NCBI GenBank assembly: GCA_038496445.1
Contig: JALMLS010000216.1
Span: 310,001-374,000, forward strand
Origin: Trichosphaerium sp. ATCC 40318
Lineage: Eukaryota; Protista; Tubulinea
Direction: 5' to 3'
Length of the DNA stretch: 64,000 bases
Shown here piece by piece: positions 21,425-55,595 of the stretch. Numbering within the stretch: position 1 is the stretch's first letter; each line of letters opens with the position of its first letter. The notes under the pieces are model-generated. The model saw nothing but the letters and a program-made list of their open reading frames with translations. It ran no database searches and was not told where the DNA came from. Position numbers and translations under genes: made by a program.

Positions 21425-22423
21425 ATGAACAAAGATACTGCATTCTTTGATGAGATTCCCATTGAGATTATCGTTATTATTCTAGAGTTTATGTCTGGTT
21501 TAACAATTAATTCAGTGGTACACGTATCTAAACTATTCGAGCACGTTGCAATAAACCACTTGGAATACCGCTCTAAAAGCAGGTATATTATCATTAAATC
21601 AATAAATAAGCTTAGAAAGCTATTCAAAACAGCGTATTTTCTCATGACAACCGAAAGGATTACGATAAGTATTCAATTCTCGCTTAAAAAGAACCAAATG
21701 AAGTACTTAAATGGTGTAAAAAGTATTGACTTTCGTTCTTGTAAGTCACTTACTGATAGTCATCTTGAGCGACTTGCTGGGATCCATAGTATTCTGCTAT
21801 GCAACCAAAAGAAACTATCAGATACAGGTGTTATGGCTTTGGCTGGAGTGCATACAATCAGTTTGAACGGATGTGACAGCTTGACAGATAATTGTGTTAT
21901 GGCTTTGGCTGGGGTTCATTCAATTGATTTAAGCTATTGTTACCAAGTGACAGATAAAAGTGTTAAAGCATTAGCAGGAGTGCATAAAATTAGTTTATGC
22001 ATGTGTTTTCATGTTACAGATGATGGTGTAAAAGCATTGGCTGGAGTTCATACAATTTGCTTGGCAGGTTGTTCGCTGATTACAGATGATGGCATTAAGT
22101 CATTAGGTGGTGTTTATACAATTGATTTAAACTTTTGTGAGAGGATAACAGATGCTGGTGTTAGAGCTTTGGCTGGTGTTCATGCAATTTGTCTTGATTA
22201 TACCAAGGTAACAGATGACGGTGTCAAAGCATTGGTAGGTGTTTGTACAATTAGCCTTCAAGGTACTGCAGTCACCGATGAGGGTGTCAACGCATTGGTT
22301 GGTGTTCATAGAATTGACTCTGAGAGAACTAAAGTGAGAGATGTATTCCAAAGAACAAGTTCATTGTGTTACTCCAAGGTAGTTTCATTCTCAAAAAACC
22401 CTGATGATGGTTGGTTTGTATAA
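21425..22423 (+). CDS. Intronless F-box/leucine-rich-repeat protein (332 aa)
   Basis: F-box-like FDEIPIEIIVIILEF followed by about 9 repeats of ALAGVHTIxLxxCxxITDxGVK. Confidence 0.9.
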   Translation: MNKDTAFFDEIPIEIIVIILEFMSGLTINSVVHVSKLFEHVAINHLEYRSKSRYIIIKSINKLRKLFKTAYFLMTTERITISIQFSLKKNQMKYLNGVKSIDFRSCKSLTDSHLERLAGIHSILLCNQKKLSDTGVMALAGVHTISLNGCDSLTDNCVMALAGVHSIDLSYCYQVTDKSVKALAGVHKISLCMCFHVTDDGVKALAGVHTICLAGCSLITDDGIKSLGGVYTIDLNFCERITDAGVRALAGVHAICLDYTKVTDDGVKALVGVCTISLQGTAVTDEGVNALVGVHRIDSERTKVRDVFQRTSSLCYSKVVSFSKNPDDGWFV

Positions 22424-23271
22424 GCAATAAAAGACCTAAACGCAATGTCACTTGCGTTTGTAGAGCTTCTAAGTTCTGTTGTGTAAGAACCTTCAACTGT
22501 CCACTATTCAGTTAAAACGTTGGGTAGAGTCACTATGTTACAGATAACTACTTCATTATCGTTATTTGTTCTAAAAACACAGCTTCTCTCCATTCAAATC
22601 TAACGCAATTAGTAATCGCCGATTTATCGCTCGAAATTAAGGAACGAGTCATTACTGCAGATTGATGAAGTTTGATTCTGAGCTTGCTACACCATTACAA
22701 TTAAGCAAGCGAGGCCTCCTTCTACAGCCTCCAATCCCTTACCTGTTTTGTTGCTAGTAATTTGGTGTCGCTCCAGCTCCACGTTTAGTATAAGCGCTCT
22801 TATAACATGTGAGCAGCGCATATAACTATCCACAAATATGGTCAAAGCGGTGTAAAATTGACAAACGTCAAATTCGCCTCATTGTGGTAGTTAACACGTG
22901 CTTGAATAATATTGCTTCTATTATACCACCTTTATAGGTATGTATTTGGTAGTTTTAATACCTTGACGTTAAAAGCAGTACACGTTATTCTTCTTGGTTC
23001 ATATTGAGTACACTTTTTTTTTAAAAAAATTGCAACATTTTATATGTAGTCGTTTGGAGGTATAGTTGAAAAACTGTATTTTGTACCTATGCCACATGTA
23101 TTACATAATGTACGTATCACTACAACATAACATATTTGTCAGTGTGTTCTACCTCACAACCCAGTACAATGTTGTTGCAATTGTTTCAATGAACGTAATT
23201 TTTTTTTCTTTTTCCCAACAATAAATTTAATTACTAGGCTGATAAATCATGTTCAACAGCACCCAATAAGT

Positions 23272-23466
23272 AACCTTCTCGGCCTTTTGGCTAAGATCAA
23301 GTGTAGTATCTGTTCTATTCAGTTTAATCTCTGAATGGGGGACGAATGTCCCCCACAAGATTAAGCGAATTTTTTCCGGGGGCAGGGGATTGTCGGACTG
23401 GCTTGCCTTTCCACCCCTGCAATGATCTGTCAGGCCTTACACTACCCGCCAGATGAGGTCAACCCC
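23272..23466 (+). ncRNA. U2: U2 spliceosomal snRNA
   Basis: CTTCTCGGCCTTTTGGCTAAGATCAAGTGTAGTATCTGTTCT 5' signature; stem IIa ATTCAG/CTGAAT; IIa loop TTAATCT complementary to AGATTAA (IIc); IIb TGGGGGAC/GTCCCCCA; U-rich Sm region; stems III and IV. Ends are +/- a few nt. Confidence 0.97.
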
Positions 23467-23493
23467 TTCTCTAAACATCAAAGAAAAACAATA

Positions 23494-23611
23494 ACCACCT
23501 TCAGACTGGGAAAGCACTCTCTGTTTTAGGGTATAAATTTACCAAAAAAATTTTACAAGTCAAAAATTTTGGTGATACTACACCTGATCTTAGCCAAAAC
23601 AAAAATCACAC
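23494..23611 (-). ncRNA. Candidate U2-like short RNA, or antisense element in the U2 3' trailer; left copy
   Basis: 23574-23599 is the reverse complement of U2 nt ~15-40 with 1 mismatch, flanked by predicted hairpins and Sm-like sites. Transcription is not demonstrated. Confidence 0.4.
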
Positions 23612-25082
23612 TTTTTCTTGTTTTCGTTTTCCAATCACGCCATTTCCCTTGGTATTTACACAACAAAGTCATTACGCCTCAAACACCTAGTTTATAGCCA
23701 TGAACTCTTTTAACTAATAGGGGTGTGTAAACACTTTGTGAAAGTAAGTTAATTTTACCTCTGCCGCTACCATCAACGAGAGTTTCTTTGAGTTCATGCG
23801 GTTCAAACAATCACACCAAAGTGCTCCTACTCCACTTGCGTTTCAGCTACATGGTTACCATGTTGACCACGTACCATTGATGTAAACGTATTTGTATTTA
23901 ATTGGTGTGCTCATTATGTGACGCAAGTTGCTAAGGACCAATCATATGAAATTGCATTGTACATGATTGATGTCACTATGAAAGGTTTGAAGACAACTAC
24001 TTTGTTGAAGCTCCTCAGAGGGCAGTACAAACACTAACTATCATGGCTTGCAAGTTTTCTAGCAACGCTGAGTTGGCAATGTATACAGTTTTCTGACAGC
24101 AACTGTATCTTTAGATGATGCTCGTTTATTGCCTATAGGAATGGAATGCATGAGAGCAACTATTCCATGAAAACGCTGATATGCCTTGGATGGAAGCTAT
24201 ATTTAAATCAAAACATACAACTCATTATGCTGATGGTTAAACTTCGACGGCAAGCTGGATATGGAGTTAAAAACATCTGAAGCATCTAAATTCAATTTGC
24301 TGCGTTTTCGTTTGACCTGAGATCGAGAAAATTGTAGTTTGCAATAGTTCCTTCCATTTATAAGATGTAGATGTGGTCGGGTCCCAGTCACAAAAATTTG
24401 TAGCCGTAAACCGACAGCCTGCTTTGTAGGAAACTCAGCAACAAAATCTGTAATCGGCTAAGATCTGATGGATTTGACACTTCTGACAGATCTTGCAATC
24501 TCACTTGTTAAATATGATCTACCCACACGGCTGTCTAGCGAACCCAACTGTTTTAAACCCACGCGATTTAACAAACTGACAGAAATTTATTATTTGCAAA
24601 TTGACGCCTAGATGCGTTTGCAAAGCCTACAGTAGCGTTGATAGTGTTTTGGAAGGTTTTCATGCTAATATCCCTGCTTTTCTGTTTGAATGCTGCGAGA
24701 GTGCTTCCGTTAGCGTAGGGTAGGCGTTAGTGTAGCGCTAGTAAGTTATACACGTGCGTTAAATTTTTTGAAGCAAACATACCGCAAACAGTGTTTGAGG
24801 CATTCATACCACCGTTCAGCAGTAATGAGCTAGTTTTGTAGCTATCAAACCATTTTAATTTGCTTTTAGCTCTTTGAAGAATAATGTTTGATCGTACCGT
24901 GTATGTAGGTAAACACTGCGATCATCTTGCCATGTGCCTACTGAAACTGACGTTAATCACTTAACGTACATAGACAGCAAACGAATAAAACTGATACTTG
25001 ACGGTAAACGTAGTGTTTTAAGTACGACGGGTTCTATTCTCAGCTTTGAAATGGCGTGATTGGAAAACGAAAACAAGAAAAA

Positions 25083-25200
25083 GTGTGATTTTTGTTTTGG
25101 CTAAGATCAGGTGTAGTATCACCAAAATTTTTGACTTGTAAAATTTTTTTGGTAAATTTATACCCTAAAACAGAGAGTGCTTTCCCAGTCTGAAGGTGGT
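25083..25200 (+). ncRNA. Candidate U2-like short RNA; right copy
   Basis: TTTTGGCTAAGATCAGGTGTAGTATC at 25095-25120, followed by AATTTTTG and AATTTTTTTGG Sm-like sites. Confidence 0.4.
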
Positions 25201-25227
25201 TATTGTTTTTCTTTGATGTTTAGAGAA

Positions 25228-25422
25228 GGGGTTGACCTCATCTGGCGGGTAGTGTAAGGCCTGACAGATCATTGCAGGGGTGGAAAGGCAAGCCAGTCCG
25301 ACAATCCCCTGCCCCCGGAAAAAATTCGCTTAATCTTGTGGGGGACATTCGTCCCCCATTCAGAGATTAAACTGAATAGAACAGATACTACACTTGATCT
25401 TAGCCAAAAGGCCGAGAAGGTT
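25228..25422 (-). ncRNA. U2: U2 spliceosomal snRNA (second, apparently identical copy)
   Basis: Reverse complement of 23272-23466. Confidence 0.97.
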
Positions 25423-25825
25423 ACTTATTGGGTGCTGTTGAACATGATTTATCAGCCTAGTAATTAAATTTATTGTGGTTTTTTTTTTTTTCCTGTGCTA
25501 TCGTACGGAAAATCACTTTACAACGATTATACGTACTATTATGGGTTACAAATGCGTTTCAGTTAAGAACAAGTGGATAATGACTCTATTTCTTTTTTAA
25601 AACACACGCTCAATGTCTCGTACGCGTCAATATCATGAAACAGAACATTGAGTGATTTTGTACAAGTATCCGCTTTTACATCACACCAAATTTTGGTATA
25701 CACGATCTCGCTTCTCCTGTACGCTTTTTTTCAGTGTAAATGAGGTTCTAGATACGAAAAAAGCAAAGCAGAAGACGCTCCAAATTTAAATTTGAAGTCA
25801 AAAATAGCTGTTTACGAAAAAAAAC

Positions 25826-26110
25826 CAATAGGTCGACTTCTACTTAACCGTTTCCGCCTCTGTATGGGCTTTACATGCGTAGAAGAGCCAATTTCGACTA
25901 TTTGTATGCGTTTCAGGAGCGTTGTGAGCGAGAGGCAAAAAAGCCGAAACGTGCGAGTTTTCTTTGTAAACACGCCAAAAAATGACAACAAACGCTGAAA
26001 ACTTACTGGTTTTCTTTGTAAAACAGCGGTCTAAATGACAGGAAACTCGCACAATTTTCGGCTTTTTTGCCACAAAGCGGAAATGTTTAAGTGGATGCCG
26101 ACCTGATTTG
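25826..26110. repeat. Imperfect nested inverted repeat (foldback element)
   Basis: 25934-25963 pairs with 26040-26071, and 25826-25863 pairs with 26072-26110. Confidence 0.7.
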
Positions 26111-53136: not shown

Positions 53137-55595
53137 ATGCGTGGGGCTACATTATTTATCTTTGCTGCCTGCTTTACCGCACTGGTTATTGCTGATTGTT
53201 ATATGCACTGCCCAAAGGGAGGTAATAACAGACTGAACAGTAAGAACACGAATACCCGTAATGATAACAGGATGTTCGACTCTCAAAATAACAACAACGG
53301 CGGATACAACAAGCCAAAGCTATCCCCTGGATGCTCTTTCTACTCCAAATCACTCCTACAAGTCGAATGGACCGTTCAACACGGTTGCGGCCAAAAAGAA
53401 AGCGATGGAGGTAAATTGAACTGCAACATGGTTATGCAATACGCCTGCGGTAAAACACCTGTCGATCAACTCACTAACCTCGTCGATGTCCACATTCGCG
53501 ATGGTGAAAGAGACGAAGACAACCCAGCGCTTGGTAACAACAACCTCCAAGAAAGAAAGACCGCCAACGCTAACGCCGAAGCCCCTGGAAAGCCTGGTGT
53601 ATACTTATACGGACAACACGAAAGTCAATTTTACTACGATTCTTGCAAGAAACGTGAACGTAACAAGGGTCTTTTCACTGCTGATCGTAACGTCAACAAC
53701 AACAGAGGTGCTACAGCTACAAGACAAAACAACAATGGTAACCAACGCGGTTTCGAGTGCCCAGAAGAGCGTGATTACTACCCATACTGGCATCCAACCC
53801 CATGGATCGATGTTGCCGTACTTATTGACCCTGCTGGAAGTATCACCGAATCCAAAATCTGCAACTACTTCAAGAGCGAGTCCTTCAACACACGTGGTAA
53901 ACACTACTGTTCCGATCCTGCTGGAGAACCATCTCAATACAACAACGAAGCTGACTGCGAACAAGCAGGTCAAAACTGGCTCGTACGTTATTATTTCTTT
54001 GTATTATTAGTATATTTAGAGGAGGGGTTGTGTACCCAACTTGCACCCCTTTCGTTCACACAAAGTTTTTTCCCCTTTTCATTTTCTCACGTTTTTTTTT
54101 TCGCTTAGGAACATCCTCCGCACAACAAGAGAAAGAACCCAAGCATTGACGTCGGATCACCAGATTGTCAAATCGCTCAATGGGCCCGTGTTAACCACCT
54201 TGGTAATGTCGGTAACGGCTTGACTGGTAAACCTGGTACATACGATTGGATTCTTCCTAAAGTCGATAAAGAATCAGCTGAGTTTTACTCCGCTTGTACT
54301 TTCAGATTACGTTACAATATCTCTACCCAAGATTATGATGGTTGGAAGGGTTTCTCTCACGGTGTAAGCAGTTCTTTCCGTCTCTTTCCTTAAAAAGAAC
54401 TTTTCTCGCTTTATTAGTCAAAACTCCTCTTACACCTTATTTAGAGCAAGGACGAAGCTATCACTGCTGCCAGCAACGGTGAGAACTCACCAGTCAAAAA
54501 CAACCCTACTCTTATGACTAGCGGACATAACTTGACTTTGGCTATCAATACTGCTCAATTCGGTCGTACTTTCCAAGATCGTTCCCATGTATTCAAAATC
54601 TTGCCTCGTGATAAGAATCTTGAAGATTTCAACCGTGTATACAATTGTATCGCTAAGGGAAAACGTGGTAATATTGTCCAGGCACGTGAACACAAAAGAA
54701 AACCTCTGTTCATTGAACTTTTCGCTTATTCTCCTTTTTTAGGCTTATCCAGCTACTGAATATGACTTTGGATGTAATAACATCAATGTATTCAAGGGTG
54801 ATTACTTGCATTTCTGCTTTGAGGGTTCCCATGATAACAACCAAAATTATGCTGGTGAAGGTCGTCAATCCACTGATGCTTTCAACATGGTAGAATTAAA
54901 CGAAGCCACTCACAGTATGTTCTTGCCTCTTAAGGCCTCCGATCGCTTCCAAGTTGGTTCAAAGAAGATCGAGGTACGTACAGTAGTTACAAGCACTCTA
55001 GAAGGTGCTTTGTAATGCAACTCTCTGTCTGGACTTTTGTTAATAATTCTTTCTTTTAGACATCTCAAATGTTCAACGACGAAGATCTCGCTTTCCAAAT
55101 GGCTTGGGCTGGTCAACCAGAAGCATACTGTGCTCCTGACTTCAATGTTAACAACAACGACCCAAACCCTCCTTGTTGCTTGACATACGCTCAATTGCAA
55201 GCTAAACACGGTAACAACCAAGGAAACAAGAACCAAGATAAACTCAACTGTGGTAAACTAAACAGCTCCCCACAATATTGGCAACCTGGTCCTATCCGTA
55301 CTTCAAAGATTGCTTCAGGTACTCATCACTACATGAGCTCTAGAAACAACAACTTCTCCAACAGATCCCAAAAGGTACGTCACGTGAAAACAAAGAAAAG
55401 TTGGTTAGTTTGTGCTTACCTTTATCGTTTTAGGGAACAATCACTGTAAGCCCTCACTTGTCATGGGCCGCTGTTGCTTTCGTTATCATCGGTGTATCCT
55501 TGTTCGTAGGTGGTGCCGTTGTAGCCTTTGGTTTGTACTACTCTCAATCACACCCTGGTTCTGCTTGTGCCAACATCTTCCAAAACTTGAACTAA
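53137..55595 (+). CDS. Protein DD3-3-like secreted/type I membrane protein
   Basis: Signal peptide, then [15 protein letters not shown]...[47 protein letters not shown] and [15 protein letters not shown]; C-terminal TM. Confidence 0.9.

Follow-up and report, generated by a model that had tools for sequence, protein, structure and literature searches.

An inverted copy of the U2 branch-point recognition core behind the U2 snRNA genes of Trichosphaerium sp. ATCC 40318

Two U2 snRNA genes of the amoeba Trichosphaerium sp. ATCC 40318 are each followed, ~105 nt behind the gene, by a 26-nt copy of U2 nt 15-40 that lies inverted relative to the gene. We analysed these loci in a stretch of 64,000 nucleotides (contig JALMLS010000216.1, positions 310,001 to 374,000; hereafter the window). 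The inverted fragment is real; its function is unproven. Our best reading, held with somewhat less than even confidence, is that the fragment is a scar of templated repair or of a mobile element, homogenised together with U2, and not a gene of its own.

The U2 cassette and its inverted fragment

An Rfam search of the window placed the two full U2 genes face to face (Table 1). Both genes and both fragments are spanned by an inverted duplication of 429 nt, beyond the edges of which the alignment showed no significant similarity between the arms. Because both fragments lie inside one perfect duplication, they are a single element seen twice and not independent, and their mutual identity is uninformative on selection. 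The first-pass annotation had described a miniature U2-like unit beside each U2 gene; the two occurrences are there, but they are the arms of one duplicated block. Such an abrupt-edged, 100% identical duplication may stem from a recent conversion or may be an assembly artefact. The 5' edge of the cassette lies inside the U2 promoter element, which suggests that the homogenised block is a functional unit including the 3' flank. The U2 RNA encoded here is 198 nt long with a lengthened stem III, and its own Sm site (23367-23377 and mirror) ends in CC where G is usual. A 16-nt inverted repeat with arms ~120 nt apart (25934-26071) lies in non-coding DNA upstream of U2 copy 2.

Table 1. Coordinates of the features in the window and of U2-like segments in CRESS virus genomes.
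Feature	Position	Strand	Remark
U2 snRNA gene, full, copy 1	23271-23468	+	Rfam, 150.9 bits
U2 snRNA gene, full, copy 2	25226-25423	-	Rfam, 150.9 bits
Inverted duplication (429 nt), left arm	23218-23646	+	100% identical to right arm
Inverted duplication (429 nt), right arm	25048-25476	-	100% identical to left arm
DUSE-like element, U2 copy 1	23213-23221	+	at -58; cassette edge inside element
DUSE-like element, U2 copy 2	25473-25479	-	at -56; cassette edge inside element
Final 35 nt of duplicated cassette	25048-25082		CCAAT-like motif at 25053-25063; putative promoter
Copy of U2 nt 15-40 (U6-pairing arm and branch-point recognition sequence)	25095-25120	+	25/26 identical; A30G at 25110
Mirror copy of U2 nt 15-40, other duplication arm	23574-23599	-	25/26 identical
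5' hairpin, flank pairing U2 nt 20-29	25086-25109	+ only	predicted by folding
GGTG-N6-CACC palindrome around branch-point recognition bases	25110-25123		needs A30G; both strands
Palindromic A/T tracts (n = 3), ~15 nt apart	25121-25160		source of Sm-consensus matches
U2-like segment, L019	984-1044		CRESS genome
U2-like segment, L020	985-1028		CRESS genome
U2-like segment, L021	1046-1105		CRESS genome
U2-like segment, L106	674-705		CRESS genome
U2-like segment, L013	229-252		CRESS genome

The chance expectation of such a match to U2 was 0.00 in 100 shuffles of the window, and each copy lies 263 nt from its U2 template. Sequence comparison confirmed the anatomy that had been assigned to the fragment, as it contains both the U6 helix I arm and the branch-point recognition sequence GUAGUA. 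The unit around it (25083-25200) matched the U2 family RF00004 in Rfam, at 16.9 bits, below the gathering threshold of 46. At relaxed thresholds this sub-threshold match was the only one for the unit, and the spacer between the cassettes gave nothing. Stem IIa after nt 46 is absent; alignment of the flank to U2 nt 41-198 showed no similarity, and the Rfam match deletes this stem. Upper stem I and stems IIb, III and IV are also missing from the unit. Across eleven comparisons of the unit flanks with U2 and of the upstream regions with each other, none was significant (best 14 of 300 shuffles). The earlier statement that the flanks are unrelated to U2 thus agrees with the alignments, but the 5' flank forms pairs in the register that U2 uses for stem I and, judging by this pairing, may be decayed U2 sequence. 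If nt 4-14 are homologous, changes affect 6 of 11 positions there versus 1 of 26 in the core (p = 0.001), an unevenness implying that the core was selected or that the copy never included nt 1-14.

The sole substitution, A30G, is the change that closes the branchpoint-interacting stem (BSL) of U2, in which it turns the A30-C40 mismatch into a pair (mutant M1, PMC13019295), and the U2 homology of the fragment stops at C40. This end lies beside a known target site: after insertions of the elements Utopia and Keno, U2 resumes at nt 39, which places their site at 38|39 (PMC4640811), give or take microhomology in the case of our fragment. The end at nt 40 and the GGTG-N6-CACC palindrome around 38|39 are compatible with an element junction or an att-like relic. 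No reading frame follows the junction at the unit, and a U2 fragment ending at nt 41 occurs, unselected, in contig L025.

Exact short repeats are enriched in the 98 nt around the core, with eight direct and nine inverted repeats (p = 0.004 and 0.013, respectively, versus AT-rich tiles of the window). Template-switch scars are repeat-rich in this way; a selected hairpin array could produce the same enrichment. A shared 10-mer, GAGAGTGCTT (24697 and 25173), and a second GGCTAAGATC at 24456, inside a local hairpin, are short enough to be due to chance.

Folding, promoter elements and transcripts

The 5' hairpin of the unit had been described as strand-specific, and folding reproduced this, with a predicted energy of about -3.8 to -4.0 kcal/mol on the plus strand and 0.0 on the minus strand. 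Of the random flanks tried, 0.3-1.8% paired the U6 arm equally well (p = 0.003-0.02 for the pairing observed, rising to at most 0.05 when the cut-off was loosened and the flanks were shuffled), and 0-0.3% formed the hairpin stem jointly with the GGUG/CACC stem; these tests were post hoc, as they were defined once the fold was known. The G-U asymmetry would also be expected in a stem I copy that is decaying. The second annotated hairpin (25121-25153) is also present. The first-pass annotation further proposed a ~120-nt RNA with its U6 arm locked and its branch-site reader free. This fold is the predicted minimum for an RNA of 74-78 nt ending near 25156-25160, with three abutting hairpins at 74 nt. 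Over the full span of 25083-25200 the prediction is the opposite, because another long hairpin wins, in which the U6 arm stays open while the branch-site reader becomes paired. Folding of the whole unit was not significantly more stable than expected (z = -0.9 to -1.0), and z reached -2.35 only for a hand-picked span of 93 nt.

Matches to the Sm consensus were found on the plus strand at 25126 and 25142, where Sm-like sites had been proposed, and also on the minus strand at 25129. The chance of such a match within 40 nt is 1-3% per site. The sites of the unit are predicted to be 60-70% paired, i.e. 0.3-0.4 unpaired versus 0.72 for the Sm site of U2 itself. Since palindromic A/T tracts supply the consensus on both strands, the Sm-like sites are not strand-diagnostic.

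Small RNA genes of dictyostelids carry a DUSE ~60 nt upstream (PMC7919456; PMC3188802). With a pattern relaxed from that of Dictyostelium, which may not be Trichosphaerium's own, DUSE-like motifs were found near this position at both U2 genes versus none within 150 nt upstream of either unit. Only ~36 nt upstream of the unit are common to both copies. Runs of at least four T occur at 25089, 25095, 25128 and 25144, all in the first 70 nt of the unit. Pol III terminates at such runs, and hence transcription of the unit by this polymerase is excluded.

Three public runs, all from one sample, contain part of 23470-25225. We omitted U2 nt 1-62, which resemble human U2, from the comparison with the reads and placed the contigs on 23647-25360. 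Of this stretch the contigs cover only 24568-25022. No contig covers 25039-25225 or the 3' part of U2, so that the positive control fails as well; a filter may have removed U2-bearing contigs. Such data lose short RNAs without poly(A) and therefore cannot refute a short RNA from the unit. The index shares of 0.21 and 0.17 fit the spacer transcript alone (0.196 and 0.150) and not the spacer plus the unit (0.366; binomial p = 4e-5), which, if the index was unfiltered, speaks against these libraries containing a long transcript that crosses the unit.

Exact contigs jump over 24842-24897, a minus-strand intron of the GT-AG type. The resulting spliced spacer transcript (24568-25022, minus strand) has no reading frame of more than 31 codons and carries AATAAA ~20 nt before its 3' end. 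Its start lies ~60 nt from the unit, head to head and in the opposite direction, with the CCAAT-like motif midway between the two; together these may form a divergent promoter. The region ~24600-24870 belongs to a multi-copy and apparently abundant non-coding family, with several paralogous contigs of 85-90% identity that differ by single-base indels, an Sm-like site at 24762 on the plus strand and no Rfam match.

Origin and possible roles of the fragment

In the scar reading, an inverted DNA copy of U2 nt ~15-40 would have landed behind an ancestral U2 gene, either through template switching while DNA was being repaired or because a mobile element that targets U2 left its junction behind. Duplication or conversion of the whole cassette as a block would then have spread it to other U2 copies. 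The hairpins and Sm-like sites would have arisen incidentally from A/T tracts and from short copies made locally, both inverted and direct, and a U2 transcript that ran on would form a 26-bp fold-back as a passive consequence. In favour of this reading are the single identical cassette, the missing DUSE-like element, the T-runs, the unremarkable fold, the repeat-rich flanks, the end of homology at a known target site, the lack of inverted partners at U2 loci of other eukaryotes and the index shares; both the mode of origin and the near-neutrality of the fragment are what we infer. Several observations fit a scar less easily. What was copied is U2's functional core, the 5' hairpin is specific to one strand and rare among random flanks, and the one substitution is the one that closes the BSL. 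Moreover, the position of the cassette edge within the U2 promoter element points to a block that is perhaps itself a functional unit, and in CRESS viruses this stretch of U2 is conserved between flanks of foreign sequence. As a scar, the locus would be a minor record of U2 genes that were struck by template switching or by U2-specific mobile elements before being homogenised. A functional segment would be an antisense lock built into snRNA precursors or else a naturally occurring decoy of the U2 5' domain, neither of which we found described.

The antisense lock is, in our judgement, rather unlikely. It supposes that Pol II reads past the 3' end of U2 and that the antisense segment folds back onto U2 that is still unprocessed, so that neither its U6 arm nor its branch-site reader is exposed; in a variant, a severed 3' piece would bind U2 in trans, and the role would be quality control of, or feedback on, U2 3' processing. 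For a read-through of 130 nt the predicted 26-bp duplex has a mean pair probability of 0.90-0.94 and gains ~25-27 kcal/mol, and the segment would not need a promoter of its own. Yet any inverted copy yields such a duplex by geometry alone. The substitution, moreover, puts an A-C mismatch in the middle of it (-37.1 versus -41.3 kcal/mol), a weakening by ~4 kcal/mol that is a median effect (rank 45 of 78 changes). Furthermore, the G-U-containing hairpin belongs to the opposite strand, and no contig reading from U2 into the unit was seen in the three runs. That strand bias would suit a sense RNA of ~75-120 nt, transcribed by Pol II from a divergent promoter at 25048-25082, which would keep its U6 arm closed, present the branch-site bases in a loop and act as a branch-point or SF3b decoy, possibly bound by Sm proteins. 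We consider such an RNA unlikely, and we are equally doubtful of its extension, in which the displaying loop is stabilised and the RNA exemplifies a wider U2-mimic module, also captured and conserved by CRESS-DNA viruses, that would adjust splicing by decoying branch points or proteins that bind U2. The abutting hairpins of the 74-nt RNA, the joint rarity of its two core-pairing stems (a post hoc result), the BSL-closing substitution and the low chance frequency of the Sm consensus all speak for a sense RNA. A spliced transcript starts nearby in the opposite direction, so that a promoter is close; there is a viral precedent, in which stem I covaries in L106; and lineage-specific Sm RNAs exist, such as Drosophila LU (PMC4053861). 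These points are set against the missing DUSE-like element and stem IIa, the exclusion of Pol III, Sm-like sites that are predicted to be largely paired and are present on both strands, a fold that shifts with the 3' end, and the lack of reads. As for the transcribed variant snRNP or decoy that was originally proposed, its putative RNA has two sequence features that favour the sense strand, the strand-specific hairpin and A30G.

The palindrome that brackets the 38|39 target also raises the quite improbable alternative of a DNA recombination site, in which GGTG-N6-CACC around U2 nt 34-39, with its phased A/T tracts, would be an att-like core for a U2-targeting tyrosine-recombinase element. The site might be a decoy target or the partner for inverting the 263 nt between the cores. 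Such an inversion would join the U2 promoter and nt 1-40 to the flank that bears the Sm sites. The inverted 26-bp arms at this spacing suit the idea, as does the predicted inversion product, which keeps an intact stem I, the Sm-like sites and the 3' hairpins; however, the branch-site bases are paired in that product, and both copies in the window share the same orientation state. Less credible still are a box C/D guide for U2 methylation and a short intron on the strand of U2. The substitution does create CUGA after a 10-nt antisense stretch (CTGA at 23584 and 25110), and 23532-23592 reads GT...AG. The cassette, however, contains no box C within one mismatch, for which reason we rejected the guide, and the complementarity continues 12 nt past CUGA. 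The +5 rule for C/D guides would point to A35, which to our knowledge is not a methylation site. We also rejected the intron: spans of the form GT...AG often occur by chance, and the contigs showed no splice joint at 23532-23592.

Comparison with other U2 loci, known systems and CRESS viruses

Among metagenome and MAG contigs, ~30 full U2 genes from other eukaryotes were without an inverted partner, and hence the arrangement is not a general one. Scanning metagenome and GTDB contigs with sequence patterns recovered truncated and variant U2s but no U2 with an inverted core, and no relative that shares the arrangement turned up among the metagenome and genome contigs scanned. Metagenome matches ending at nt 40 are not evidence, because the pattern forced this end. 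Phage matches of 16-21 nt look coincidental, produced by the coding sequence of a T4-like gene, and they caution that chance can yield short matches to U2. In the literature searched we found no description of an inverted U2 fragment behind U2.

Among the other loci, L009 (41-66 and 1057-1248) contains a full U2 and, ~1.2 kb downstream, a second, direct copy without nt 1-14 and stem IIa. This second U2 bears a deletion between two GTATC repeats and keeps stem IIb and the Sm site, i.e. it is a naturally shortened U2. Tight clusters of U2 with U4, U5, U6 and tRNA genes occur in L014, L003, L012 and L002, with AG instead of UG at nt 41-42, and L015 looks like a bird U2 pseudogene.

Processed pseudogenes are a known class of 3'-truncated U2 fragments. 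The unit resembles such fragments, and the 5' junctions of Utopia and Keno (PMC4640811), in that a U2 piece ending at nt 38-41 is followed by foreign DNA, as is also the case in L001 and L025. In contrast to them, its nt 1-14 are absent or rewritten, no reading frame or element body comes after it, and it occupies a fixed inverted position behind a full U2. With U2 snRNA itself (RF00004) it shares the near-identity over nt 15-40, the register of lower stem I and a U-rich Sm-like site downstream; it differs in its low Rfam score and in lacking the remaining stems and a DUSE-like promoter. Work by Hinas et al. in 2006 is said to have found the U2 variants of Dictyostelium to be full-length, expressed U2 genes with a DUSE. 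These are likewise amoebozoan U2-related sequences within a DUSE-type promoter system, whereas the Trichosphaerium unit is a 26-nt core without a DUSE. Drosophila snRNA:LU is transcribed from a PSE promoter, carries a TMG cap, binds Sm proteins and has orthologues that covary (PMC4053861). Like the proposed RNA of the unit, LU is lineage-specific, is ~116 nt long, lies beside an snRNA gene and has stem loops around an Sm site and a proposed pairing with U6. Unlike the unit, LU is without the U2 core, and in its case promoter, cap, Sm binding and covariation are established.

The closest parallel in foreign flanks came from circovirus-like genomes. In three of these (L019, L020 and L021, each with a Viral_Rep domain) rep and cap end on either side of a segment that corresponds to U2 nt ~8-42. 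The segment lies in the 3' intergenic region, reads in sense on the capsid strand and directly precedes AATAAA in L019 and L020. It is the best-conserved DNA of these genomes, at 97% identity over 32 nt where the Rep proteins are 53% identical, in pairwise comparisons of the viral copies. In L106 the sequence of stem I differs yet still pairs, and in L013 nt 17-40 precede a Rep-like start. The viral and amoebal sequences are alike in placing U2 nt ~10-40, ending at nt 37-42, in foreign base-paired flanks. The viral segment differs in being conserved across divergent viruses, mostly with upper stem I, and in lying by the ends or starts of viral genes instead of beside U2. We found no mention of it in the literature, including circovirus papers. 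By analogy, these viruses show that a mimic of the U2 5' domain can be selected elsewhere, which is no evidence for the amoeba locus. With this parallel, the decoy idea could be tested in cultured cells, also if the amoeba itself proves impossible to manipulate.

Two protein-coding genes of the window may be mentioned. A single-ORF leucine-rich-repeat protein with 22-aa repeats and an F-box-like start is encoded at 21425-22423 (plus strand), 850 nt upstream of U2 copy 1; a search with this protein found no second assembly of the locus and only distant relatives, the nearest ~50% identical. A homologue of the DD3-3 protein is encoded at 53137-55449 (plus strand); its relatives, 35-46% identical, occur in sponges, corals, algae and fungi.
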